From: Dicyema japonicum
Lineage: Eukaryota; Animalia; Dicyemida
DNA length: 64,000 nucleotides
Reading direction: 5' to 3'
Assembly: GCA_011109175.1 (NCBI GenBank)
Contig: RDEW01000029.1
Location: 755,472 to 819,471, forward strand
Below, piece by piece: positions 241 through 53,095 of the stretch. Under the pieces are notes generated by a model. That model worked only from the letters and a program-made list of their open reading frames with translations, searched no databases and was not told the DNA's origin. Numbering within the stretch: the stretch's first letter is position 1; every line of letters starts with the position of its first letter. The position numbers and the translations under genes are program-made.

Positions 241-1435
241 ACGTGTCTGTTGGCGGTTGTTGTTGCGATTATCGTTCCCACTTCGAGGAAAAAGGTACCA
301 GCAAAGTCAACTGAGATGTGTTCGTCTTGTCGGCTTGTCAGAACTCGGAAGCGTGGGATTTCCTGCTCTGCTTGTGAAGATTTTTTCTACCTCGGGTGTA
401 TCAAGTTATCCCAAGCCTCAACGAGCGTGCTTGGAGTATGGCACTGCCAGTCATACCTTGGCCTAAGCAGGGAGGTTCCCCCTGCCCGCGCCAATGTTAA
501 CTCTCCCGTTAATTGCCAATCAACCACTGACCCTGAAATGTTCCTACGCCTCATCTCTGAGTTACTTTCTTCCCGGACTATCCCTGTGAGGATTCCCAAG
601 GCCGTACGATCTGTCGCTGCGGAGGCTCTTTCCAAAACGACCGAAGACGCCATCCGAACTAACGCAGTACTTGATTGGATACGCTTATTTAGTTTTGAGC
701 CTTATGCTTGATCGAGATGGTCACGGAAGGTAGTCTCTCGCTAGTACCATGAGGACCAACATTCGTTCTTTTTTGGGAGCTATCCATATCCCCAGTTGTC
801 CTATGGCTTTTAACCATACGAAAGAAATACGTGATCAAAACGAGGAAGTCGAAGTGCTCAGTCTCAAGAGAACTGTCCGGTTGAAGTTAATAGAAGGTGG
901 CACCCGCGCAGCCATCAGGGCACTTTCCTCAAATGGACCACGAAAACCGACTCCAGACGCATACAATAGTTTATTGACCAAACATCCTCTGCCACCCCAA
1001 AACTTACGCCCAGTGGCTCCCCCATCCGGAGTTAGTCCCTAATTGCATCAGACAATGAAGTTTTCCTCGCAATACGGAATTTTGCCCCTAGTAGCAGTGG
1101 TGGGCTCGACGGATGAGACCTGGCTACCTGAAGGATCTACCTCTTTGTCCGTAAGAGACCAGGGACTTAGTCTTACGAATTAAATTACTTCACTTATGAA
1201 CTGGATAATGTCTGGAGTTCTTCCCGAAGTTATCCGCCATGTCATGTTCTCAGCCAATTTGATAGTCTTTGATAAGAAGGAGGCGGAGTACGACCAGTTG
1301 AGGTCGGTTTGTCTTCAGATGATTGGCTGCCAAAATTGCCTCCAGACATTCTATTCCACTCGTCACAAAATTCTTGAACCCCCCTCAAATAGGTGTCTGT
1401 TTTCGCTTGGGATGCGAAACCACTGTCCATTCAGT
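241..1435 (+). mobile_element. PHD-finger CRE-clade non-LTR retrotransposon, 5' half, decayed (copy A)
   Basis: Degenerate PHD (CSSC..CSAC..FYLGC..WHC), then IPVRIPKAVR..WIRLFSF, the GLDG..PGYLKDL region and the RT start, all homologous to the element at 34151-37281. Stops and frameshifts present. Confidence 0.85.
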
Positions 1436-2390
1436 GACCAATAAATCACATATTCAGAATGGGCCGATGGAGCGGAGTGCTACACGGGAACTTAAGCAGA
1501 GCAAGGCAGCAGTTTCCGAGACGGTATCTCGGGAGTTAAGTGAAATAATCGTACATCTGGACAAGCTATGTACACTACTGAAAGTGGATTTACGAAATAT
1601 GGTGGACCTGGCTGTGAAAAGCGGAGGCCACCAACAAAAACTATGAAAAAGTATTTAAAAATAGTGCTGTGAATGCCCGCTCCTTGGTGAAAAAGCATGA
1701 TGAACTAGCTCTACTTGCGAAGAATGCCAAGGTTGATGTCTTGGTAGTCAACGAGACGAAAATTAAACACGTAAGATATTATAGTATGGAAGGATATGAC
1801 TCGGTGGACATCTCGTGGAAGGATAAAGCAGTGGCTGGGACTTTTTCCTTAAAGAATTGCAAATACGAAACGATTCTATTTTATTGGCCGCCGATTCGGA
1901 ATTTGTGTTTGTCGATGTATAATGTGGATGGACGTGGATAAGTGTGGGAGGATTATCCTCTAAGGACTTGGCCCGATCTTCTGCGAAAATTGTTGAGTTC
2001 TTTGAAAGAACCCTGATGTCGATCTTGGTAGGTGACCTAAATGCTAATATTACGAGTTACAGATGTTGCAAATCAACGGGGATGGGCGACTCCTAGCAGA
2101 TCTGGAGCGAAGTTTGAGATGGAGTCTTGACGTCTGAGAAACCTAACCATTTCTCACACTATGACGGTGATATGCTGGGATTGGTCCTAGTGTCTCCACA
2201 ACTTCTAGATCATGTGGACAGAGCAAGAATACTGTGTGATATAGGGAGCGATCAATTCCCACAGAAGGTGATTATAAACCAGGAGCCGAATATTGTTGAA
2301 GATATTTTCATAAATTATGATACCTCGTCGATAGACTGGGGAGATTATCGTTGTTATTTGTCGAAGACCTTACAAATGAGGACTAATTCC
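1436..2390 (+). mobile_element. I/Jockey-type LINE fragment (ORF1 tail plus APE endonuclease)
   Basis: KIVL-NARSLVKKHDEL..DVLVVNETK, LVGDLN and DIGSD(Q) motifs. Paralogous to 39836-40790. Confidence 0.8.
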
Positions 2391-7649: not shown

Positions 7650-8445
7650 CGTGGAGCACGTTGTGGTCGTTGTGGTGCCAAGAAGAAAGAAAAAAAGAAG
7701 AGAAAAAGAAAGGAAAATTAGAATAGAAAATACAGAAACCTAATCAGGCTAAGTCTGACTCTGCTCACTGCCATGCTATGGATTAAGCTATACTTAAAGA
7801 ATTACTACTTATACCTGCGAGATCAAAAGAGCTGTGTGAGTCTTGCGGATATCGCAACGCGAGAAGCAAGGTTGGAATTGTACATCTTGCAGGCGATATT
7901 TCCACCTCGGGTGAGTCCGAATGTCGAAATTGGCTGCGAGATCTCTTTAAAAATAGGACTGTGCATACTGTATGAATTCTGACCACGCTCAATGCAGCCA
8001 TCCGACTGAATTCAGTCATCTCTCTTACATTTATTTTGGACAAATCGAACCATTTTTGTTACGCCTATCCGAGAGTCGGAAAGGTAGACGGATTCCAATG
8101 AGAATACCAAAGGCAGCTCGAATTCCTGCTGCTGAATGCCTCACGTCATTAATTGATAAAGCTATCAGCACCAGCGACCAAGCCTCTTGGATACGTCTAC
8201 TGAGCTTTGCATCTACGAACCTTGGAATTTCTGCCTCAGAGCAAGCTCGCAACGGATCACTGGCCTTAAAAATCAAGAAGAATACTACTTCCATTTTGGT
8301 CATTTCAACGAAGCAATACTCTGGAATCGAGCCAGAGCAAGTACTTCGGTGCAAACAGTTGTCTACAGAAGCTGGGAGTAAACAGGAAGATTCTAAAGCA
8401 TTTCGAGAAATTATTTCGCCAAAAACGACCGAATCTGAATAGGAA
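7650..8445 (+). mobile_element. PHD-CRE 5' fragment (distinct subfamily)
   Basis: acgtg.. 5' end, frameshifted PHD (CESC..TSC..FHLG) and IPMRIPKAARIPAAECL..WIRLLSFA. Confidence 0.75.
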
Positions 8446-8739
8446 AACAAAATTTATCAGTAAAATTGATATTTTCAATTTTAATAGAAAAAATTGAAAT
8501 AAGGATTTTTTCAAAAGTCTAAGAAAATAAAAGACTGATACCTAAATTTGTAGAAAAATAAAATAAGTGAAATGAATATGGCAAGACAGTGAAATTTTAC
8601 TTATTGTAATATATGATGATGATCCGTGAATATTGTCCTTGTTGATCAACGTGATCGGACTCTGACGTGAAAAATGATAATTACAAATAGAATGGCAAAA
8701 CTCGTTAGGTGATAAGATTCACAAACAAATGATGTTTGT

Positions 8740-9450
8740 AGTTTACGTGGGAGTGACCGATGGTTGCGAGGTAGCAGTCCACGGATGTTCACCATGTTCT
8801 GAACACCGGATTGCCTTATTGTCGGCTGATGGGACTCTGAGACGATCGCGGAGTCAATACTGAATGTCAAATTCGATGATCTGGGCTGGACTATGTGCAA
8901 ACAATAGGCGAGAAATGGGGGCATTGGGTTGAGATCCCCCCTTGAAGCCCTGCCTGCCTACTTTTCATCCCTTGCGAGCTGTAGTCGCTTGGCCCAAGCA
9001 GTCCTACATAAAGCAACCGGACATACCTTGGACTCGGAGCTTGACAGAGTTTGCAAGTTGTGGGGTGAGTTGGACTTGGAATTCCCGTCGAACTTCGCTT
9101 GCCAGAAGAGTTGGGACTCAATTGCATGTATGAGCACTCTGGAGGCCGCGAAGAAAAGCGCCAACCAACACCGACTAGCAAGCATTAAGTCGGCGGCACA
9201 TCGCGGAAATGGAGTCTGGTCAGCAACCAGTACCTATACACTATCTGTAAATCTGAAAGCGGTTCATTTCGAGGCAGACCACGGACAACACTTCCTCTGA
9301 CTTTAAATAAAGACATAAAAAATGAAAAATGAGACGGGAAAATATTGATGACTTAGACGAACTCCAAAAATCGAAATCTCAAGAGGAGCGTGGAAGCGTC
9401 TGACGGCAAAGATTATCCGGGGTGCGGCACAAGCGACATCAATTGATTAA
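8740..9450 (+). mobile_element. Chimera: internally deleted CRE RT fragment joined to an RTE 3' end
   Basis: GCEVAVH and LRSP..LPAYFSSL..SWD (CRE) up to about 9230, then FRGRPRTTLPLTLNKD..DDLDEL..WKRL (RTE C-terminus). Confidence 0.7.
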
Positions 9451-33875: not shown

Positions 33876-34140
33876 ACCTAGTTACAAGTTACATTCATAA
33901 ATATGTGACCTATATTTGAAAACCAGTATTAACCCCATAAAACACAAACAATTAACTAATTTAATTATTTTTTCTGCTTTTGAAACGACTATAGAGTTTA
34001 AATATTTTTTTATTTTGTACAAACATCGTTTTTTCTAAACTTTTTTATATAAAATACATCAAAATGGTAAGACAAAATAAAACTCCACAAAGAAACCCTA
34101 ATAAAATCCCTGAAAATTAAAAATTTTAAAATAACCTAGT
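33876..34140 (-). other. Duplicated TM and cytoplasmic exon cassette of the lectin gene
   Basis: Diverged copy of 37283-37552: 26-nt intron, exon GILLGFLCGVLFCLTIL, 24-nt intron, tail (I)KNDVCTK*. Confidence 0.75.
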
Positions 34141-34150
34141 TAAAAAAAAA

Positions 34151-37100
34151 ACGTGTTGTCGTTGTGTTGTTGTTTTTCGCCTATTGTGATTATTTTCCTA
34201 TTTTTGACTTTCTCTTATTGACTATTTTCGCCTATTGAGACTATTATCCTATTCTTGATTTTCGCCTATTGAGATTATTCCCCTATTATTGATTTTCGCC
34301 TATTGTTGATTCAGTGGAATGTTACTCGAAAAGTCATCGTCTAATTGCTCTGCCTGCAACATGAGCAATTTGAGAAAGTTTGGAATTTCTTGTTCTGCCT
34401 GTGGAGTCTTCTTTCACCTCGGGTGTTTGAAGCTCTCTCAGGTCTCTATCCGTGCTCTTGGGTATGGCACTGCCGCTCGTGCCTTGGAATTGGTTCGGGG
34501 TTTCCTAATGGTCACGCGAGTGCATGTACCTCCGGGGAAGACCTTTCCCATTTGGATCCAGATTCGCTGCTCAAAATTATCAATGAACGCCGGTCATCGA
34601 GGAGTATCCCGGTGAAGATCCCTAAATCTGCCCGCCCCCTAGCTGCCGAAGCCTTAACTAAAGCAATCGACGATGCACTCCGCTCCGACTCTATAAACGA
34701 CTGAATACGTTTGTTTAATTTTGCTCCTTTCGCTCTTGGCTCCTCCAGAGATCGCAATCGGAAAGAGTCTCTCTTGATTGAGATGAAGAACAACATCCGC
34801 GCATTTATAGATGGAACTCACTTTACGGACCTCACGTCCTTCTGCATCCGTGCAACTGAGACTGGAGTTCAACTCGGGAAACGGAGATTCTTCGCCTAAG
34901 AAGGACCGGACGATCGAAGTTGCTTGAAGGAGGAACCCGATCCGCATTGAAGGCCCTCTCACTCTCAGATGGACCACGCAATCCAACCATTGTTACAAGA
35001 CTCTATTGGGGAAACATCCACCCTCTCCGAATGACCTACGCCTTTGCTCGCCCCATCAGAAGTGAGCCCTTTGACCACGTCGCCTGAGGATGTCATCACG
35101 GCGTTATGGAACTTTGCACCAAGTAGCTGTTGAGGTCTCGATGGCTTAAGGCCCGGCCATCTTAAAGACCTTATTTCATCGACTATTGGAGACCAAGCAA
35201 GTCGTCTTTTATACTCACTCACTTCTCTTATGAACAGGATATTATCTGGACATCTACCTGATTTGATACGCCATATCTTGTTTTCGGCTAGTCTGATTGC
35301 CGTCGACAAGAAGGGCGGTGGAATCCGCCCGATCGCGGTCGGATTCACTTTCAGAAGACTAGCAGCCAAGATTGCTTTCAGATTTTCTACGTCAATCTTG
35401 TCAAAATCCTTACTTCCCAGTCAAGTTGGAGTCGGAGTTCGTCTTGGATGTGAGGCAGCCGTTCACTCCGTCAGAAGATTCAGGAACAGCAGCATTCAAG
35501 ACTTTAAAAGGCACATTATGGTAAAACTGGACATCAAGAACGCTTTTAACAGCTTAAGAAGAGACTGCATTCTGGAGGCCTGCAAGGAAAGATGTCCGTA
35601 CATATTTGAACTGGTCAATTATTCATACGGAAAACCTTCATCACTATTGCACGGGGATTTCATAGTTCCATCGTCCTCAGGTGTTCAACAGGGCGACCCC
35701 CTCGGACCACTGCTGTTCTCCCTCGGCATTGAGAGGATCACGAAGCTCTCTAGATGCCCACTCAACATCTGGTACCTCGATGACGCTGTCTTAGGAGGTC
35801 CCCCGGAAACGGTCTTCCAGGACTTAGAAGTACTCATCCCCGCGCTGTCCGAGGTGGGTCTTCAGTTGAATATAACGAAATGTGAAATAACAAACTGTGG
35901 TCTTGCTGACGATGACTTCTCTTCAATTGTTCAAAAATTTTACTCCTTGTTTCCCGGTGGGATTTCGACCCCTGAAAATGAATTGATTTTTCTTGGATCC
36001 CCGATCACTAGTAATGCGATGAAGCATGTCCTCCTTGACAAAAAACGACTCCTATGCGATTCGCTGGAAAGATTACAGCTGCTGGACTTGCACACAGCAC
36101 TATTCCTATTGAAAAGAAGTCTCAACATCCAGAGAATCTCCTATCTACTAAGGACAGCTCCATATTATTCTCAACTGGAGCTGCTCGAGAATTTTGATTT
36201 GTCTCTCCTCAGCTCGACGGAGCAAATATTTAATGTCCGATTCGACGATGATACATGGATGCAGGCTACACTCCCAGTTAGATTCGGGGGTCTTGGAATC
36301 CGTCGAACTTTGGACGTCTCACTTCCCGCTCATTTATCATCACTCACGGCCTGCGAACCTTTGGTCAGGAGGATTCTACACTCCCCACCCGAATTCTCAA
36401 CTGACCAAGAGATAATCCACGCACGAGAAGCCTGGAATGCCACCAACCTCCCCCTGCCTCCTTCCCAAGATCGCCAGCGAAACCTGGACAACTTATTATG
36501 CTGGAAATCATTTGGACTCCTACTGGAATCTGCCAATCAGCACCGACGCGCTTGTTTGCTTTCGGGGGCTTCCCCTGAGAGCGGAGCTTGGCTAAACGCC
36601 ATCCCCAATGGAGCTTTGGGCACTTTTCTGGATGATGAATGCGTTAGAACTGGTATCTCTCTGCGGCTGGGACTAAAAGTATGTGTACCTCACCCGTGCC
36701 GATGTGGTCCTGATAGACTGCTATGGCCTGCACCCTCTCGCCTGCAGGAGGAGCGCTGGCAGATCCCCAAGGCACAAGGCTCTGAATGAAATTGTCAGGC
36801 GAGCTATGGATGCTGCTGGATACTCGGCCATTCTTGAACCGGTCGGGTTATGCAGAAGTGACGGGAAACGACCGGACGGGATGACCATATTTCCATTTGA
36901 GGCCGGGAAACCACTGGTTTGGGATGTGACATGTACAGACACGTTCGCCCAGAAAAATCTTCACGAGAGTGCTACAAGGGCCTGTTCAGCATCCGTAAAG
37001 GCGGAGAAGGCCAAACTCGTTAAATACGTCGACCTTCCCGATGATGTCAAATTTGTTCCCCTTGCTATGGAGACTTCCGGATCCTACTCCCCCTCTACAC

Positions 37101-37281
37101 TCGAGTTTTTCGGACGTCTTGGAAACCGGATCACCTCATGCACTGTAGATCTCCGTGAACGCCGCTGGCTATTTGAGCGAATTTCGCTCGCAATTTTGAG
37201 AGGGAACAGCCACGCAGTGAGGGCGGAAACTACCTGACTTCTATTGTTTAAATTTACTTGTCAATAAAGTCAAAATTTAAA
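34151..37281 (+). mobile_element. Full-length PHD-finger CRE-clade non-LTR retrotransposon (PHD-RT-RLE), a few stops and frameshifts
   Basis: PHD (CSAC..CSAC..FHLGC..WHCRSC); RT (IRPIAVG, QVGVG, KLDIKNAFN, GVQQGDPLGPLLF, WYLDD); CCHC knuckle (CRCG..HPLAC); RLE (RHKALN..KRPDG..LVWDVTC..ETSG). Flanked by aacctagttaaa at 34133-34144 and 37282-37293. Confidence 0.93.
34174..34306 (+). repeat. Tandem motif array in the CRE 5' UTR
   Basis: Four copies of ttttcgcctattg interspersed with cctatt variants. Confidence 0.8.
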
Positions 37282-37366
37282 AACCTAGTTAAACAAGTTT
37301 ACATTCTTAAATATAAGTGACCTGTTTTTGAAAACCAGAATTAAGCCATAAAACAAAAAAGATTCA

Positions 37367-38578
37367 CTATTTAACTATTTTTTTCTGCTTTTGATTGATT
37401 CCTCCATGAAGTGTAGCTGTTTTTTCATTTTTGTGAAAATATCGTTTTTTTCTGAATTTTTTTATATAAAAAACCTCAAAATGGAAGGACAAAATAAAAC
37501 TCCACAAAGAAACCCTAATAAAATTCCTGAAAATTAAATAATTTAAAGTAACCAATATAATTTAATAGACCTTTAGAGCATTCTGACTCGACTGAATGTG
37601 CAGATTCTGATCCACTTAGTTTAGAAATATTTGAAGGTTTATTTGTTGTTGAAATCATTTGTATCGATTCTTCCATAACTATAGATTTTAAGGTGGTACT
37701 AGTTGGGGTTTCTTCAGTTGCTTGGTTAGTAGTTGCAGAAATTGGGGTCGGACTATAAGCGGTTGTTTCTGTCGTTCTTTTAGTAGTTTCAGAAGTTGAG
37801 ATCTGACTATTAGCGGTTGTTTCTGTCGTTCTTTTAGTAACTTCAGAAGTTGAGATCGGATCACTAGCAGTTGTTTCTGTCGTTCTTTTAGTAGTTTCAG
37901 AAGTTGAGGTCGGATCATCAGCGTTTGTTTCTGTCGTTCTTTTAGTAGCTTCAGAATTGGAGGTATGACTATTACTGATCATTCCGACTGGCTTTTTAGT
38001 AAATGTAATGGTTGTTTGTGGTAGAGCATCTGTTTATTAAAGCATAAACTTACTTGTTTGACATGCGAATCCTTGAAAATATTGAGAATTATAACAATTA
38101 CAACGTTTCCATCGCCAAGCAAAATATTTTGATAGACAAATACAGTTTTCAAAAGTAGAATAAGGATCGGGAACAAAGTCTGTATAATTCAAAGGTTTTC
38201 CTTGAAAGTAAAAAACTTATCTACCATTAAACATCCAGACCGAATTTTCATAATATCCAGCTATGTAGATACGAGTATTATCATCAAAATGCCTTGTATT
38301 TAAATATGCACTAATATTCGTTGAAGTTTCATCTGATTCAATTAATGCCTAAAATATCAATGAAGATTACAATTTCCGCTCTCATTTGGCTGCATAACTT
38401 TTTAGCATCGAAATAACTTATTTGTTGAATAACAAAATAATAGCAGAATAGGTTATGCTCAAACACATTATTTCCATATGTATTCTTAACAGGACATTCA
38501 CAAAAAACTAAAAAATATCAAAATAAAATAATCAGAAATGATTAAAACAAAAAGGTTATACATAATTGGGTCAAACAT
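37367..38578 (-). CDS. C-type lectin domain, Thr-rich mucin stalk, TM receptor (copy B; first intron donor mutated)
   Basis: Introns 38508-38532 (AT donor), 38349-38370, 38201-38224, 38030-38053, 37527-37552 and 37452-37474 give CP..CYYFV..DAKKLC..ALIESDE..IAGY..GKPLNYT..ENCICL..WKRC..GFACQ, then the mucin stalk, LLNYIGILLGFLCGVLFCPSIL and RKKR..*. Confidence 0.88.
37745..37970 (-). repeat. 54-bp coding repeat (18-aa STSETTKRTTETT-type mucin unit, about 4 copies)
   Basis: Visible in ORF 37515..37982. Confidence 0.9.
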
Positions 38579-38647
38579 TTAGGTATTATTTATTTTATGA
38601 AAATTATTCATTATTTTTATTTTTAATTACAATTTTATTAAAAAATT

Positions 38648-39835
38648 ACGTGTCTGTTGGCGGTTGTTGTTGCGCTCATCGTTCCCACTTCGAGGAAAAA
38701 AGTACCAGCCAGGTCAACTGATATTTGTTCGTCTTGTCGGCTTGTCAGAACTCAGAAGCGTGGGATTTCCTGCTCTGCTTGTGAAGATTTTTTTTACCTC
38801 GGTTGTATCAAGTTATCCCAAGCCTCAACGAGCGTGCTTGGAGTATTGCACTGCCAGTCATACCTTGGCCTAAGCAGGGAGGTTTCCCCTGCCCGCGCCA
38901 ATGTTAACTCTCCCGTTAATTGCCAATCAACCACTGACTCTGAAATGTTGATACGCCTCATCTCTGAGTTACTTTCTTCCCGGACTATCCCTGTGAGGAT
39001 TCCCAACGGCCGTACTACCTGTCGCTGCGGAGGCTCTTTCCAAAACGACCGAAGACGCCATCTGGACTAACGCAGTACTTGATTGGATACGCTTATTTAG
39101 TTTTGCGCCTTACGCTTGATCGAGATGGTCACGGAAGGTAGTCTCTCGCTACTACCATGAGGACCAACATTCGTTCTTTTTTGGGAGGTATCCATATCCC
39201 CAGTTGTCCTATGGCTTTTAATCATACGAGGGAAATATGTGATCAAGACGAGAGAGTCGAAGTGCTAAGTCTCAAGAGAACTGTTCGGTCGAAGTTAATC
39301 AAAAGTAGCACCCGAATAGCCATCAGATCACCTTCCTCAAGTGGAACGCGAAAACCGATTCCCGACGCATACAATAGTTTACTGACCAAACATCCTCTGC
39401 CACCCCAAAACCTACGCCCAGTGGCTCCCCCATCCGGAGTTAGTCCCTAATTGCATCAAACGATGAAGTTCTCCTCGCAATACGTAATTTTGCCCGTAGT
39501 AGCAGTGGTGGGCTCGACGGAATGAGACCTGGCTACCTGAAGGATATACCTCTTTGTCCATAAGAGACCAGGAACTTAGTCATATAAATTAAATTACTTC
39601 ACTTATGCACTGGATGATGTCTGGAGTTCTTCCCGAAGTTATCCACCATGTCATGTTCTCCGCCAATTTGATAGTCTTTGATAAGAAGGAGGCGGAGTAC
39701 GACCAGTTGAGGTCGGGTTTGTCTTCAGATGACTGGCTGCCAAAATTGCCTCCAGACATTCTATTCCACTCGTCACAAAATTCTTGAACCCCCCTCAAGT
39801 AGGTGTCGGTATTCGCTTGGGAAGCGAGATGTGAA
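38648..39835 (+). mobile_element. PHD-CRE 5' half (copy B of 241-1435)
   Basis: Constant offset of 38407 to copy A at the start; about 95% identical where compared. Confidence 0.85.
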
Positions 39836-42320
39836 ACCATTCAGTGAGGACACTCATAAACCACAGTATAAAAGATTTCCGGGTACATGGTCATATCGCC
39901 GCGCATTTCAAGGAGAAGAAGTGTCTCAAGTGCAGAGGGGAACACGACCTTGTGTGTGAATTTTCTCCAGATGTGAAGACAAATTGTATTAATTGTGGAG
40001 GACCAGGGCATAATACCCGATACAGAGGATGTCCTGCTATGAAGGAGGCAACCAGGAAAATGATCCCTATAAATACAGAGTCAAGAAAGGAAGCAGTCAA
40101 GTCAACACAGAAGATGAAGAGGACCAATAAATCACATATTCAGGATGGGCCGGTGGAGCGGAGTGCTACACGGGAACTTAAGCAGAGCAAGGCAGAAGTT
40201 TCCGAGACGGTATCTCGGGAGTTAAGTGAAATAATCGTACATCTGGACAAGCTATGTACACTGCTGAAAGTGGATTTACGTAATTTGGTGGACCTGGCTG
40301 TGGAAAGCGAAAACTATGAAAAATTATTTAAAAATAGTGCTGGTGAATGCCAGCTCCTTGGTGAAAAGGCATGATGAACTAGCGCTACTTGCGAAGAATG
40401 TCAAGGTTGATGTCTTGGTAGTCAACGAGACGAAAATTAAACACGGAAGATATCATAGTATGGAGGAATATGACTCGGTGGACATCTCGTTAAAGGATAA
40501 AACAGTGGTTGGGAATTCGATCTTTTTCCTTAAAAATTGCAAACACGATACGATTCTATTTTATTGGCCGCCGATTCGGAATTCGTGTTCGTCGATGTAT
40601 AATGTGGAGGGACATAGATAAGTGTGGGAGGATTATACTCTAAGGACTTGGCCCGATCTTCTGCGAAAATTGTTGAGTTCTTCGAAAGAACCCCGATGTC
40701 GATCTTGGTAGGAGACCTGAATGCTAATATTACGAGTTATTGATGTTGCAAAACAACGGGGATGGGCGACTCCTAGCAGATCTGGAGCAAAAGTTAACTG
40801 GAAAAGCCCATGTTTCTGGAAAATGTACAGAAGGCTTACTAATGGAAATTTAAAGGCGAAGAGTATTGTGCTGGCCGATCATGAGAGAAGAACAATTTCT
40901 TTGGAAAGACTACCTTCGGTGTTCAGGAAGCAGCTCGAGATATACAAGGAGTTGATCCTCTTAGTATTATACTTGAGTAGTTTTCAGAGGAGATATCTAA
41001 TTCTATGGATTACTCTATGGACGAGCTGAAAATTCTGGAAGAGGACATCACTCTGGCAGAAGTCAGAACTGCTATACGCGAGTGCAAGAACAAGGCTCCT
41101 GGATTCGACAACATTCCCATGACTATGTTTAAAAAAGGGTCCGATGAACTACTATTTGTTCTAAAAAAGATGTATAACTCGAGTTTTAAGCTCGGACATG
41201 TTTTTCCGCTATGGAAGCGTTCTATTATGAAGATGATCCTCAAACCTGGAAAGTGGATAAAAAATTCTCTTAGTTATAGACCAATAAGCCATATAAGTTA
41301 TACATCAAAGATTATGGAACGAATTGTATTCAAGAGATTGAATCGGCATATGGAAGGAAGTAACTTTCTACGACCTTACCAATTGGGTTTTCGTCCGGGA
41401 AGATCGTGCGGAAATTGTATATTCTCGCTAAATTACGAAATTACAATTGCATTTAAGAAGAAAAGTCATTTAAGCCTTGATTGCCTTGACATCTCGAAGG
41501 CGTTCGACAGTGTATGGAAGCCTTAATTTGTCAACTTGTACAATCAAAGATATCCAAACAAATGTTCCTATGATTGAAAGACTATTTGACTGGAAGGATA
41601 TTTTATGTGGTAGTCGGTGGAAGATATTCTGATGGTACATCGTTTAAGAAGGGAGTACCGCAGGGATCTATTTAATCTCCCCTTTTATTCAACGTATTTA
41701 TGGAAGATTTTCAGTCATCGCTAACGTCAGGACCAAGCTGATGATATACGCTGATAACATTTTAATCTTGGATTCGTCTTTGAGGGCATACCTTTCAGAG
41801 CGCCGTCTAGGAGCTTATGTTAACAATGTCCAGGATTGGTATGATCGGAGAGCCTTGAGATTCTCTACGGAAAATACCAGTTATTTACGGACAAGCAGGC
41901 TGAGTAAGCATCACGACGTGCCTTACACTCTTCACATAGCGAAAGTTTCGTCTCTGAAATACCTTGGAATTGTAATTGATGGGAAAGAATCATATCTGAA
42001 GGAAATCGAAGAGCCGAGAAAGAAGGCTGTGCAAGCATTGTTCTGTATTAGAAGTCTAAAGTTGGATGGTGATACCTTGCTTTTTGTTTTTCGTAATGTG
42101 ATTTTTCCAAGACTTATCTGTGGAAGCGAGGGATGGTTTTACAGCCCCTAGAGAAAGAGGATCCTCGCTAGACTTGAGAAAACAAGGCGATCAAACTATC
42201 ACTTGGAAAAAAATTATACGAAAGTCTGGCGAAGAGAACAAACTTGTCAGGCCAGTCAGTGAAGTTATTGAAATCAAGATGTGTAACTTCCGAGACCAGC
42301 AGAATGGTTATTTGTAAGGC
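39836..42320 (+). mobile_element. I/Jockey-type LINE with gag-like ORF1 zinc knuckles and APE-RT ORF2, decayed
   Basis: HGHIAAH..CLKCRGEH..CINCGGPGH..YRGCP; KIVLVNASSL; APGFDNI, SYRPIS, QLGFRPG, DISKAFDSV, GVPQGS and IYAD. Confidence 0.88.
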
Positions 42321-44594: not shown

Positions 44595-45240
44595 GAAGAG
44601 CGGCTGTCGACATTAAGGAGTAAGCGTTTCCTCGGACAACTGAAATCCCAATTCGTTCCCTCAGCCAGACAGCTCTCTGCGTCTTTCTAACGATAAGCCA
44701 ATTTCCTCCAGATTTCCTTCAGGAAAGAGGCTGTAAAACGAAAGCGATCTCCAATTTCATTATATTTTTTAATCTCGATTTTCTTAGCCAGATCAGCTGC
44801 CGATGCAGCAGATGGATAACTGAGCATCATCGACTTCTAGAAAAATCCATACAGGTGTATTCCCGTACTAGCGAGTTTCCCTCAGTCAACAGAAAGATTA
44901 TTAGCCAATCAGGTTTTTCCCCCGTCTCCGCGGTCTAATCCCAGCACTACCTGGAAGCCTGCAGCTTCAAGAACACGCATGACAATGTTGTTCATAGCAG
45001 CGTGGCTGGGTGCTCTTCCCCCACTCCGTTCGCACGTAAGCGGATGCAGCCCTTTGGTATCAACAATCGCTCCACAACGACATTGGTGTTCGACGCATAC
45101 ATCAGCTCCCAGGGGCTGTGCAATATCCAATCCGTATACAGTTCTTGTAAAAATGGGTCCCCAAGGAGGAACACGGAAGTGCATCGATTGTGGAAGAGAA
45201 CATCTTAGCCGACGAACATTCTTTTGTCTGGGACAGGGAT
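44595..45240 (-). mobile_element. CRE 3' fragment (CCHC plus RLE)
   Basis: ALPCSSLG, CVEHQCRCGAIVDTKGLHPLTC..HAAMN and the ERIGISVVRGNA-type end. Confidence 0.8.
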
Positions 45241-49112: not shown

Positions 49113-49450
49113 CTAAGAGGTCATGATGGCGTGAGCGTTCCCTCTGATCACTGCCATTTCAAGCCTCTGTCTCAGCCAAAGCCCTTCGCGGGGTTCATTA
49201 CTTTTCTTCGCAATTTTTTGTCCAATATTTGCAAGAAAAGTGTTAGTCATTGTTCCCATGACCCCCGAAGTCTCAATGGCGATCGGTACAAAAAAATAGT
49301 TCTTTATAAGGGATTCGTATTTCCTCATCTTTGCAATCTCGGCCTTGTCTGCAGCGTCTCCCGGCGAGTGTGCCGACGTCAGCACCCGCGTTCCAGAAAA
49401 GGTGTCCACGCATGTGGCGTCCCAAACGAGTTGGAGAAAAGTATGAACCG
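49113..49450 (-). mobile_element. CRE 3' end (RLE)
   Basis: LVWDATCVDTF..KMRKY..FVPIAIETSG..RQRLEMAVIRGNAHAIMTS*. Confidence 0.88.
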
Positions 49451-49996
49451 CTGCATACTCAAGGCAGTTATGAGCGATTTTCACGGCAGCTTTAAGAGAT
49501 CTCTGTCTATTCAATATTCAGATTATTAATTTCTAAAATATATACCTTGCTATATAATTGGAAACATGCTGTTCTCCAGATCCGATGGCAAAGACATCGT
49601 GAGTGACCGCGTGTGTTCTACTGCGGGACACAACGAATGTCTTTGCCATCTCCGAAATAACCTCCACGACAATTATTCTCTTAATGTTTTAAAATATTCA
49701 ATACGCAGTTTTTGTTCCTCGTGTGTTCTTGGGCGACCGAATTGTTAGTTGGGTTCATTCCTATCAATAGTGAACATCTAATACCTCAATGAGTCCCGTA
49801 TTGGAATTTGGGAGTAATTATAATTAATAAGCATCAAATAGTTATAATTTATTTTCAAATATAAAATTTAACAAATTTATTTCATTTTAACAAAAAAGTC
49901 ATCAATCTTGGTTTTTTTATTTGCTTTTCTCATCCTGCTTCCTATCACATCAAGACAGTTTAGGGCGTTTTCGTCAATTTCAGACCAATAACGGAT

Positions 49997-50250
49997 CTTT
50001 ATAGACCAATAACGGATCATGTCCAGCTTCAATTTTTTGAATGATACTGTTTAGTTGAATATTCGTAAATTGAGATTTGAATGAATGAATTATTGGTCGT
50101 CAAATTTCACATTGGTGATGCGTCTTTATAGACTAATAACGGATCGTGTCCAGCTCCAATTTGTTGAATGATGCTGTTTAGTTTAATATTCGTAAATTGA
50201 GATTTTAATGAATGAATTATTGGTCGTCAAATTTCACATTGGTGATGCGT
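49997..50250. repeat. 127-bp tandem duplication at a CRE breakpoint
   Basis: The unit starting ctttatagac occurs at 49997 and 50124, with a few mismatches. Confidence 0.85.
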
Positions 50251-51900
50251 TCAATGGTGGTCCGGAAGAGACAATCCATATCGTCGAGCTGTTGCATTTT
50301 CAGGTAGCAGGGTGCCCCCCGAAGAACGTAGTTCAGCTTCTGTGCTGACAAGGCGTTTCTTAGCAGGAAAAAGGAGGTATGTGCGTCCAGCATCTCCAGA
50401 CGTCTGAATGTTGTTTTTAGTTGATGTTCTGTTATTAGAGAGTTATTGATTCCAGCATCAGTAAGAGGGCATCCAAGTATTTCTAGTTGTTCTGATTTGG
50501 TTTCTGTAGCTTTAAGAATGACCACTCTGAACATATCAAGAATCAAGTCCCATTCAGGCTGCGGAAATCCAAAATTGATAACTTCACACTTATTGGTGTT
50601 TTGGGTTAGGCATAGGGATTCCAATTCNGATGGGTAGTATGTGAAGCATTCCTCAAGAATTGTGTCACGTCGTATCGAGTTGAAGGCATTTTTAATGTCA
50701 ATTTTGACGATTACAAAAGGAATGTTCTCGTTCTTTTCGGTGAATGTTCGGACAGCGTGAACTGCCGCTTCACAGCCCCCAGGTGTGCCGACCCCTACTT
50801 GGGCCGGTAGTAAATGTGTTGTCAACGTAGGCAGGATTGCTCTGCCTACAAGCTTCGAGGCCAACCGACGAAAGACCAGGCCAATAGTAATAGGGAGTAT
50901 TCTCCCTCCCTTCTTGTCGAATGCGATTAATTTGGCGGAAAACATTACGTGTCGAATTGTTTCTGGCAGTATCCCTGATAGCATCCTGTTCATTAGTCTG
51001 GTGATAGCCAGCACGAGCCGGACACCAGAGTTGCCCGTGTTATGAGCGGTAAGATCTTTGAGGTGACCCCGACGGAGCCCATCTAGTCCACCACTGCTGC
51101 TCGTGACGACAGAAATGATCCCATCTTTTATGTCCTCTTCAGAGACAAGTAAATTGGGTGAATGTCCTGGGCAAGGAGGGATCCGGTGGTCGTCCAGGAG
51201 ACTTGGGTGGCGCTCAACAAGTGATGCGTAGGACTGTTCAGACAACTCAATTATACGGTTTTGATCTGAAAGGATCCTCACTGCAGCACGGATTCCACCT
51301 TCCGAAAGTTTTCGATGGATCGCACTTCTTAATCTCTGAGTGTCCGAGATAGCCGATGTTGGTTTCTCATGGTTTTGGGATTTGTAGGTGGGCTTTTCTG
51401 AGTCTGTTAATAGGTTCCTTGAGAAGAATGTGTGGACATTCTCCTTTACTAATGACGTAAGTGATTTCTCTTCTTTCACCCTCTTATGGGGTGTGCATAG
51501 TGTGAATGGAGCGAAACAAAATAGTCGTAACCAATCCTCAGAGTCGTCCGAAAAAACTTCCCTTTCGATACACTCACACAGACAGTCCGCGACAGAAATA
51601 CGGGCAGCTTTGGGGATCCTGATCAGGAGTCTTCGTGTATGTGTCAGGTTTGAGATCATTTCAAGTATTTCCTGATGGTCAAGTGGGGCATGTTTAGAAG
51701 GGTAGCGTAGGGAAGAGTTTGTCGTATTATCTAAAAGGAGACATGCCCGACAGTGCCAATCGGAAATGACCGCCAGGGCTCTTTTAGTCATTCTGGCACA
51801 GGACATGTGGAAGCCACCCGAGCAGGCCGTGCAATGGATCATCCTCTTTCTTTTGTTCATCGTGTTGCATTTTTTGCAGTTGTAAATAAACCCGAAAGCG
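50217..51900 (-). mobile_element. PHD-CRE 5' two-thirds with an intact C4HC3 PHD finger
   Basis: CKKC-x10-CTAC-x4-HMSC-x13-WHCRAC (51741-51878) is in frame with RIPKAAR, GLDGLR.GHLKDL, QVGVG..GCEAAVH and KIDIKNAFN. The QGD/YLDD core is deleted. Confidence 0.9.
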
Positions 51901-52950: not shown

Positions 52951-52994
52951 GCTGGCCCTAGAGAGCCCGGCGCAGGATAAATAAAAGTACAGGG

Positions 52995-53095
52995 GGCATG
53001 AGGAGCAGCTGAGTGGTCTAGTATTTGTTACTAGTCCCCCTTGTCCTGGGTTCGAGTACCAGGGGCTGCCCGTGCCGGAACTCCGCTTGGGAAAT
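52995..53095 (+). mobile_element. SINE family-B-related tRNA head, truncated
   Basis: A box agctgagtgg and B box gggttcgagtacc, then ggctgcccgtgccggaa as in family B. Confidence 0.6.

Follow-up and report, generated by a model that had tools for sequence, protein, structure and literature searches.

What directs a retrotransposon to its insertion site when the DNA-binding head of its class is replaced by a PHD finger? Long interspersed nuclear elements (LINEs) with a restriction-like endonuclease (RLE) are the textbook case of sequence-specific retrotransposition, and one of them, R2, is being engineered for gene insertion. The question is raised by a locus in a 64,000-nucleotide stretch of DNA from Dicyema japonicum (assembly GCA_011109175.1, contig RDEW01000029.1, forward-strand positions 755,472 to 819,471), which is called the window below. 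Three-frame translation and the listing of open reading frames (ORFs) identify window positions 34151-37252(+) as a full-length, broken copy of a non-long-terminal-repeat retrotransposon, with the domain order PHD, helical linker, reverse transcriptase (RT), CCHC knuckle and RLE. We regard it as probable that this copy represents an abundant, dispersed and early-branching RLE LINE, which has a basic PHD finger as its head, moves by target-primed reverse transcription (TPRT) and uses the finger as an anchoring module. The layout of the copy, including its untranslated regions (UTRs), is as follows.

34133..34144 (+): left target-site duplication AACCTAGTTAAA, a 12-bp exact match to 37273-37284, inside a flanking tandem repeat of ~265 bp
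34145..34150 (+): additional A-run between the target duplication and the 5′ end of the element; variable A-runs stand at the equivalent junction of the full-length copies L027, L030 and L034
34151..34318 (+): 5′ UTR, beginning ACGTGTTGTCG, with 17/34-bp tandem repeats at 34167-34311 (TRF program); the 5′ end is common to full-length copies
34346..34482 (+): PHD finger (C4HC3), split by a single-base deletion near 34459; its first half scores E 2.4e-5 against Pfam PHD
34483..35229 (+): variable spacer followed by a conserved helical N-terminal domain; motifs kept in 37 homologues; aligns structurally to the R2 segment right after Myb
35230..36696 (+): reverse transcriptase with thumb and linker; Pfam RVT_1 E 1.2e-14; matches R2 proteins by PDB sequence; fold like R2 and L1 ORF2p
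36697..36745 (+): CCHC zinc knuckle (CRCG ... GLHPLAC) with a 2-bp deletion near 36707; CRCGILIDCYGLHPLAC is intact in L002 and L008, and the knuckle is nearly invariant in the family
36746..37237 (+): restriction-like endonuclease domain and stop codon; D841, D857, E884 and K887 near-invariant in the family; the model aligns to the R2 RLE
37238..37272 (+): 3′ UTR, very short and closing with ...CTATTGTTTAAA (to 37252), followed by an A/T-rich tail that differs between copies; copies share sequence to GTTTAAA and then diverge
37273..37284 (+): right copy of the target-site duplication, a 12-bp match to the left copy

According to the alignment of copies, the element starts at 34151 and its conserved 3′ end is 37252, 15 nt past the stop codon; the tail together with the target duplication reaches 37284. 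The PHD finger lies in two pieces, the first half at 34346-34426 and WHCRSC at 34465-34482. In the spacer and helical domain, the motif IPVKIPKSAR is found at 34606-34635 and GLDGLRPGHL immediately before the RT; this part is disrupted by deletions near 34863, 34992 and 35050 and by stop codons. The RVT_1 match sits in a 519-residue ORF piece, and the RT motifs are GGGIRPIAVG at 35314, KLDIKNAFNSLRRD at 35524, GVQQGDPLGPLLF at 35680 and YLDD at 35773-35784. The best PDB sequence matches of the window copy are R2 proteins. The halves of the knuckle are CRCG at 36697 and GLHPLAC at 36725-36745, and the RLE shows GKRPDG at 36863, WDVTC at 36920 and AEKAKLVKY at 37001. The number of 5′ UTR repeats varies among copies, as illustrated by a 34-bp indel relative to L018. 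These repeats (TTTTCGCCTATTGAGA...) may form an internal promoter region.

With its five frameshifting deletions (near 34459, 34863, 34992, 35050 and 36707) and additional stops, the window copy is therefore dead. It is nevertheless 97.7% identical to a near-intact relative (~2.3% diverged), and hence it is a recently inserted, young copy which is now inactive. The first-pass annotation described a single-ORF element with PHD, RT, CCHC and RLE at 34151-37281. All these domains are present, but the single ORF belongs to the intact relatives and not to the frameshifted window copy. An example of such a relative is L015:2212-5112, an uninterrupted 967-residue protein of the same genome. The window's own subfamily is represented by L018/L003, in which the PHD is intact (CSACNMSNLRKFGISCSACGVFFHLGCLKLSQASIRALGVWHCRSC), and by L002, in which the RT, CCHC and RLE are intact. 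The intact protein is ~970 residues long, and the best named database matches of the element are Octopus sinensis proteins with 89% identity.

The identity of the finger, put forward by the first-pass annotation, is borne out by Pfam: the PHD of intact copies scores 27.0 and 27.2 bits (the latter in L018) against a curated PF00628 cut-off of 24. The AlphaFold2 (AF2) model of the first 135 residues, with a predicted local distance difference test (pLDDT) of 88, shows a PHD core, a disordered spacer and the helical domain. The top 50 Foldseek matches of this model in the PDB are all PHD fingers or PHD-containing proteins. The best of them is the Alfin-like AL1 PHD (template-modelling (TM) score by target 0.85, root-mean-square deviation 1.2 Å), which is followed by Pygo, BPTF, PHF8, PHF2 and TAF3. 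Conservation points in the same direction. In the alignment of 37 full-length proteins, with a mean identity of 37%, none of the eight zinc ligands varies, and W51 is nearly invariant. The pairwise identity of the PHD is 40% (27% without the ligands), whereas the spacer following it reaches 16%. Conservation across homologues is the measure here, since the subfamilies lie too far apart for dS and copies belonging to one subfamily decay neutrally. The PHD is an old, selected part of this RLE clade.

It could still be supposed that the finger is an accident of this genome and does nothing for the element, having arisen by capture of a host exon or as a chance pattern of Cys and His. LINEs do capture host sequences, and relatives of the present family bear odd extra domains (UCH, OTU, RFX, nuclear-receptor zinc finger). 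This explanation is nevertheless very improbable, because the zinc ligands are invariant and a PHD with matching spacing, flanking motifs and position recurs in homologues from many sources. Of the 120 best-matching full-length homologues (35-43% identity across 98% of the query), 46 have a complete N-terminal C4HC3, and these share the signature C-x2-C-x2-3-N-x-R-K-R/K ... C-x2-C-x3-(F/Y/W)-H-L-S/T-C-V-G-L-T ... W-x-C-x2-C. Many of the remaining homologues are gene predictions that begin within or shortly after the PHD. A search of 67.5 Mb (377 contigs) of the same genome gave at least 4984 first-look candidates for the RT, and the full-length homologues in public data amount to hundreds. Such numbers of copies and homologues exclude a chance origin of the domain architecture.

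The body of the protein that follows the finger is that of an RLE-type element. The RVT_1 scores in Pfam range from 1.2e-14 to 6.5e-19, and the RT fold resembles those of R2, L1 ORF2p and group II RTs. The knuckle C-R-C-G-x7-H-x3-C is nearly invariant among the 37 homologues, and so are D841, D857, E884 and K887 of the RLE (RPD...WD...E..K) in the family alignment, which makes the domain a predicted nuclease. No APE domain was found by Pfam, with Exo_endo_phos unmatched. The full-length AF2 model (pLDDT 88.7, predicted TM score 0.83) is nearest to solved R2 complexes (Foldseek E 2e-23). In the VIA-align superposition, R2Bm residues 265-1107 fall onto model residues 115-963 with Z ~24-25.6 and ~700 aligned residues, and the R2 alignment runs into the C-terminal RLE of the model (residues 115-967). 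Because this alignment starts at the helical domain, which corresponds to the segment after Myb, the modelled PHD and spacer fall into the slot of R2's target-binding head, composed of zinc finger (ZF) and Myb modules. The first-pass annotation, which had set the PHD at the position of these modules, is confirmed by the superposed structures. The N-terminal C2H2 ZF and/or Myb module that characterizes RLE-type elements is missing, and the PHD stands instead. A structural review describes the ZF/Myb region as present in all early-branching LINEs (PMC5678591).

The occupant of the slot differs between lineages. Related lineages carry a single C2H2 finger (P0127, P0182 and many lepidopteran elements, with C-x2-C-x-K-S-F-x4-R-G-L-x-I-H), a PHD (Diaphorina P0202), or a PHD together with C2H2 (P0061, P0179), and further ones have no recognisable head. 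The PHD design is also found in hemipteran (Diaphorina), barnacle, other arthropod and cnidarian relatives or clusters. The PHD head is therefore not peculiar to this genome, but old and widespread in animals, and the N-terminal head is clearly a modular, exchangeable part.

Additions of another kind were noticed among the database homologues. Eight of them (P0007, P0009, P0030, P0034, P0037, P0060, P0077 and P0113) collectively represent relatives with UCH/USP, OTU, RFX or nuclear-receptor additions. In this group a full ubiquitin C-terminal hydrolase (UCH/USP) domain occurs after the RLE, with Pfam E down to 2e-65, and one UCH-bearing relative is annotated in the barnacle Amphibalanus. In other relatives the addition is an OTU protease at the N-terminus, an RFX DNA-binding domain or a nuclear-receptor zinc finger. 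The fusion of a deubiquitinase to a LINE protein seems to be little described.

The insertions themselves show how the element behaves toward its target. Clear target duplications of 7-12 bp were found in 5 of 10 full-length copies (the window copy and 4 of 9 others), and their sequences are unrelated: AACCTAGTTAAA in the window, AAGTAAACATGA in L027, AACATTGACA in L030, CTTAACCAA in L034 and AGTTTCC(GG) in L031. Past GTTTAAA, every copy has its own A/T-rich stretch, often with poly(A) at the end. The first-look search of the 67.5 Mb gave 710 candidate 3′ ends and 40 candidate 5′ ends, which is the customary 5′ truncation of LINEs. The unrelated duplications, the A-rich tails and the 5′ truncation therefore argue for LINE-like TPRT that is not site-specific. 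The element is dispersed and not site-specific, unlike most RLE clades (Kojima and Jurka 2015, PMC4640811).

The tandem repeat around the window copy was considered as a target and rejected: this copy does lie in a 265-bp satellite, but the flanks of other copies are unrelated. The repeat of ~265 bp occupies 33880-34144 and 37285-37560, being interrupted by the element and resuming directly past the target duplication. Two further peculiarities of the junctions were observed. First, an A-run of 6-16 nt separates the upstream target duplication from the first base of full-length copies (window 34145-34150, L027, L030, L034), which would fit a jump of the RT to a poly(A) tail as it finishes the cDNA. 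Second, 6-50 nt lie between GTTTAAA and the poly(A) or target duplication (window 37253-37272, L002-L034). This stretch is rich in A/T and different in each copy, and AATAAA or ATTAAA is frequent in it; it may stem from a short 3′ transduction or from untemplated addition.

The family has diversified within a single genome. The identities of the RT candidates include many of 97-100% and further bands at ~80-90%, 62-75%, 51-55% and 41-49%. In a tree of same-genome copies and database homologues, at least seven deep lineages of this genome fall into one clade, which has 100% support and also contains four unlabelled ENA sequences; the end branches of these lineages measure 0.5-1.1 changes per site. 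The radiation of subfamilies announced by the first-pass annotation is in this way recovered.

The name of the clade is a more delicate point. The RT tree of Martelossi et al. places 13 deep O. sinensis clusters as sister to SLACS/CZAR/CRE1/CRE2, and in addition contains ~20 very shallow clusters in three R4/Dong-like lineages, six near EhRLE and two in Hero (PMC10294476). The same work reports 'CRE types' among molluscs almost only in cephalopods (PMC10294476). At least seven deep lineages in one clade fit best the 13-cluster group that is sister to CRE. We hold it likely that the element is CRE-like, an assignment which rests on an indirect match to this published tree. RT trees and RepeatMasker assign a cephalopod radiation to 'CRE', and the family probably corresponds to it. 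Its link to the trypanosomatid CRE elements is long-branched, and the biology differs in the dispersed insertion and the PHD head.

Membership in another RLE clade (R4/Dong/Rex6-like, EhRLE-like or Hero), or in an unnamed clade of its own without relation to CRE, is in our view doubtful, but has several observations in its favor. The R4/Dong-like, EhRLE-like and Hero groups are all present in the octopus tree, in which the link between the octopus and CRE sequences spans long branches (0.86 + 1.46). Spliced-leader genes are the specific target of classic CRE elements (PMC4640811), whereas the present family is dispersed. Moreover, many relatives come from Lepidoptera, the order in which Dong/R4 is the classic RLE element. 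However, the at least seven deep lineages do not resemble three shallow R4-like lineages or two Hero clusters, and for R4/Dong this lineage pattern argues against membership. As a further check on R4/Dong, no 'reverse transcriptase [Bombyx mori]' record was found among the lepidopteran relatives. Hero membership is unlikely, since RT motifs A and B are very different. A limited comparison by eye with HEROTn residues 486-588 (103 residues, ~15-20% identity) sets LWLDLANAYGSIPH and GIITGCTISVIIF of HEROTn against VKLDIKNAFNSLRRD and GVQQGDPLGPLLF of the present family. The RT is also unusually far from R2 (E 6e-5) and L1 (0.008), as expected of the most basal clade, which again is in keeping with a CRE-like element.

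A different RLE-type LINE was met in the same genome, L040:1220-4117(-) (G000:C313). It encodes 966 residues with FMDD, the knuckle CKHCNSAKKTVDHLATRC and KPDIFVWD, but has no N-terminal finger or PHD and ends in a long acidic C-terminal extension. Its RT is much nearer to L1 and R2 than the RT of the PHD family, with scores of 1e-12 to 1e-14.

The role of the finger can be approached from its surface. H3-binding PHD fingers have an acidic surface. The cage Trp occupies the His-2 position in BPTF, ING2 and PHF2, and the other cage aromatic precedes Cys1. In a survey of charge and cage residues in 48 family PHDs, the mean net charge is +4.5 with an isoelectric point of ~10.8; the window's subfamily has +5 and L015 has +7. 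Not one of the 48 carries an aromatic ahead of Cys1, and position His-2 is aromatic in only 12. In addition, a conserved N-x-R-K-R/K loop follows the first Cys pair on the face that normally receives the basic H3 tail. The conserved aromatic cage and the acidic groove of H3K4me3 readers are both lacking in family PHDs. The positive charge and the missing cage fit better with a finger that would bind nucleic acid or an acidic surface, or contribute to nuclear localisation, than with one that reads H3K4me3.

The first-pass annotation had suggested that chromatin took the place of DNA-sequence targeting. The part of this suggestion that holds is the insertion without sequence specificity, while the part concerning a histone reader meets a strongly basic domain whose cage is not conserved. 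That the PHD reads the tail of methylated or unmodified H3, and steers integration to chromatin states instead of DNA sequence, is accordingly unlikely. The idea draws on a genuine PHD fold, constrained across phyla, and on weak sequence similarity of the finger to the PHDs of PHF2, PHF8, CFP1 and AIRE; the basic loop on the docking face is hard to combine with it. A broader form of the idea would be that a large, ancient metazoan RLE clade swapped its ZF/Myb head for a tethered PHD that recognises some chromatin feature, be it the state of a histone tail, the surface of the nucleosome or the shape of the DNA. We consider this improbable as well. If true, it would be the first LINE in which the RT-endonuclease protein itself is aimed by chromatin and not by DNA sequence, and it would offer a natural modular scaffold in which swaps of the head (PHD, C2H2, RFX, nuclear-receptor finger) change the aim.

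The explanation preferred here is the anchoring module. The protein would consist of a basic PHD-type finger, a flexible spacer of 20-40 residues, the conserved helical N-terminal domain, the RT with YLDD, an alpha-helical linker, the CCHC knuckle and a PD-(D/E)xK RLE. Its movement is most likely R2-like TPRT with no fixed target sequence. The tethered PHD, which alternates with a single C2H2 finger in related lineages, would take the protein, without regard to sequence, to DNA, to chromatin or to the element's own RNA. Several points weigh against this explanation. The structural neighbours of the finger in Foldseek are mostly H3K4me2/3 readers, the window's own subfamily (FFH) is among those with an aromatic at His-2, and histone binding by the PHD is possible. 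A loose target preference for A-rich edges or A/T-rich DNA is likewise possible, the clear duplications being only ~5. No RNA runs holding the element were found; it is contained only in four runs of assembled contigs, which share one sample and study and whose type is unrecorded. The CRE-like placement, with the basis described above, belongs to the same list.

The clade is high-copy, recently active, headed by a PHD and dispersed, and its relatives with other heads make the head an exchangeable module. It is therefore natural material for asking what aims an RLE LINE in the absence of a DNA sequence target. The family accounts for a sizeable share of the repeats of octopus genomes. Full-text literature searches found no paper linking a PHD finger to RLE-type LINEs, although Repbase Reports may mention such a case. 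The value of the finding is limited, as repeat surveys of molluscs already count the family, the domain appears in automatic annotation, and chromatin reading is unsupported by the sequence of the finger. Precomputed Pfam annotation shows the pairing of PHD and RVT_1, and so do ESM Atlas clusters of 97-201 members.

Other copies of the family inside the window were located by tblastn and translation.

49125..51881 (-): nearly complete copy of another subfamily (L015 type); tblastn pieces for PHD, mid region, RT and RLE, with PHD regular expression and translation
241..1460 (+): 5′ part of a copy, from a degenerate PHD (~304-440) to the early RT, in a duplicated segment; tblastn and translation
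38648..39888 (+): duplicate of the 241-1460 copy, with a degenerate PHD at 38711-38850; tblastn and translation
7650..9219 (+): degenerate copy with a frameshifted PHD (~7800-7950), the linker motif and a partial RT; tblastn and translation
44614..45197 (-): fragment of a more distant subfamily with the RT end, CCHC and RLE; tblastn, 25-37% identity to the RLE piece
52951..53031 (-): partial PHD fragment; tblastn and translation

The perfect C4HC3 with WHC which the first-pass annotation had read at 51878-51741(-) is found there by regular expression and translation, in a copy of the L015 subfamily. The PHD-bearing 5′ ends that it listed at 241, 7650, 38648, 51878(-) and 52950(-) are all real, but those at 241 and 38648 are not independent insertions. 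Positions 1-2111 and 38408-40791 represent a single duplicated segment of 2.1-2.4 kb with 92-94% identity, which carries the 5′ third of a PHD-LINE copy; the second copy of the segment is ~275 bp longer (39847-40122). Downstream of the element, a 155-residue ORF at 37515-37982(-) runs across a 54-bp tandem repeat (4.6 copies) and encodes Thr/Ser/Glu-rich repeats (TSTSETTKRTTETTA). This ORF could represent a mucin-like exon or nothing more than a minisatellite.

Among the known systems, R2 (R2Bm, R2Tg; TPRT complexes 8gh6, 9dou and 9nl2/3) is the closest in design. It has a single ORF with RT, alpha-helical linker, CCHC and C-terminal PD-(D/E)xK, and from the N-terminal helical domain to the C-terminus it superposes on the present model (Z ~25, ~700 residues). 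The differences lie in the head and the target: R2 has C2H2 ZF and Myb modules and one site in the 28S rDNA, whereas the present family has a PHD and dispersed insertions with duplications of 9-12 bp. R2 also has YADD in place of YLDD, and the similarity of the RTs is low (E 6e-5).

The CRE elements (CRE1, CRE2, SLACS, CZAR; 'LINE/CRE' of RepeatMasker) share the RLE-type organization with a CCHC knuckle. To our knowledge, no CRE element with a PHD has been described. The classic members insert in spliced-leader genes (PMC4640811), in contrast to the dispersed, high-copy family considered here. HERO elements are of the RLE type, mostly not site-specific and found in invertebrates (PMC4640811), and in these respects resemble the present family. 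They differ in that motifs A and B of the HEROTn RT are strongly unlike those of the family, and only two octopus clusters fall into Hero in the tree discussed above.

Histone-reading PHDs (BPTF, ING2, TAF3, PHF2/8, Pygo, Alfin-like) have in common with the family finger the C4HC3 pattern, the Trp that precedes the final Cys pair and the fold (TM by target 0.6-0.85). The family finger differs from them in its N-x-R-K-R/K loop, in being basic instead of acidic, and in having no conserved cage. PHD fingers borne by LINEs are also said to occur in ORF1 of elements of the Jockey/CR1 type (Jockey superfamily, APE). There, however, the finger belongs to a separate ORF1 protein, whereas here it is fused N-terminally to the RT-RLE protein, in the slot of target-DNA binding.

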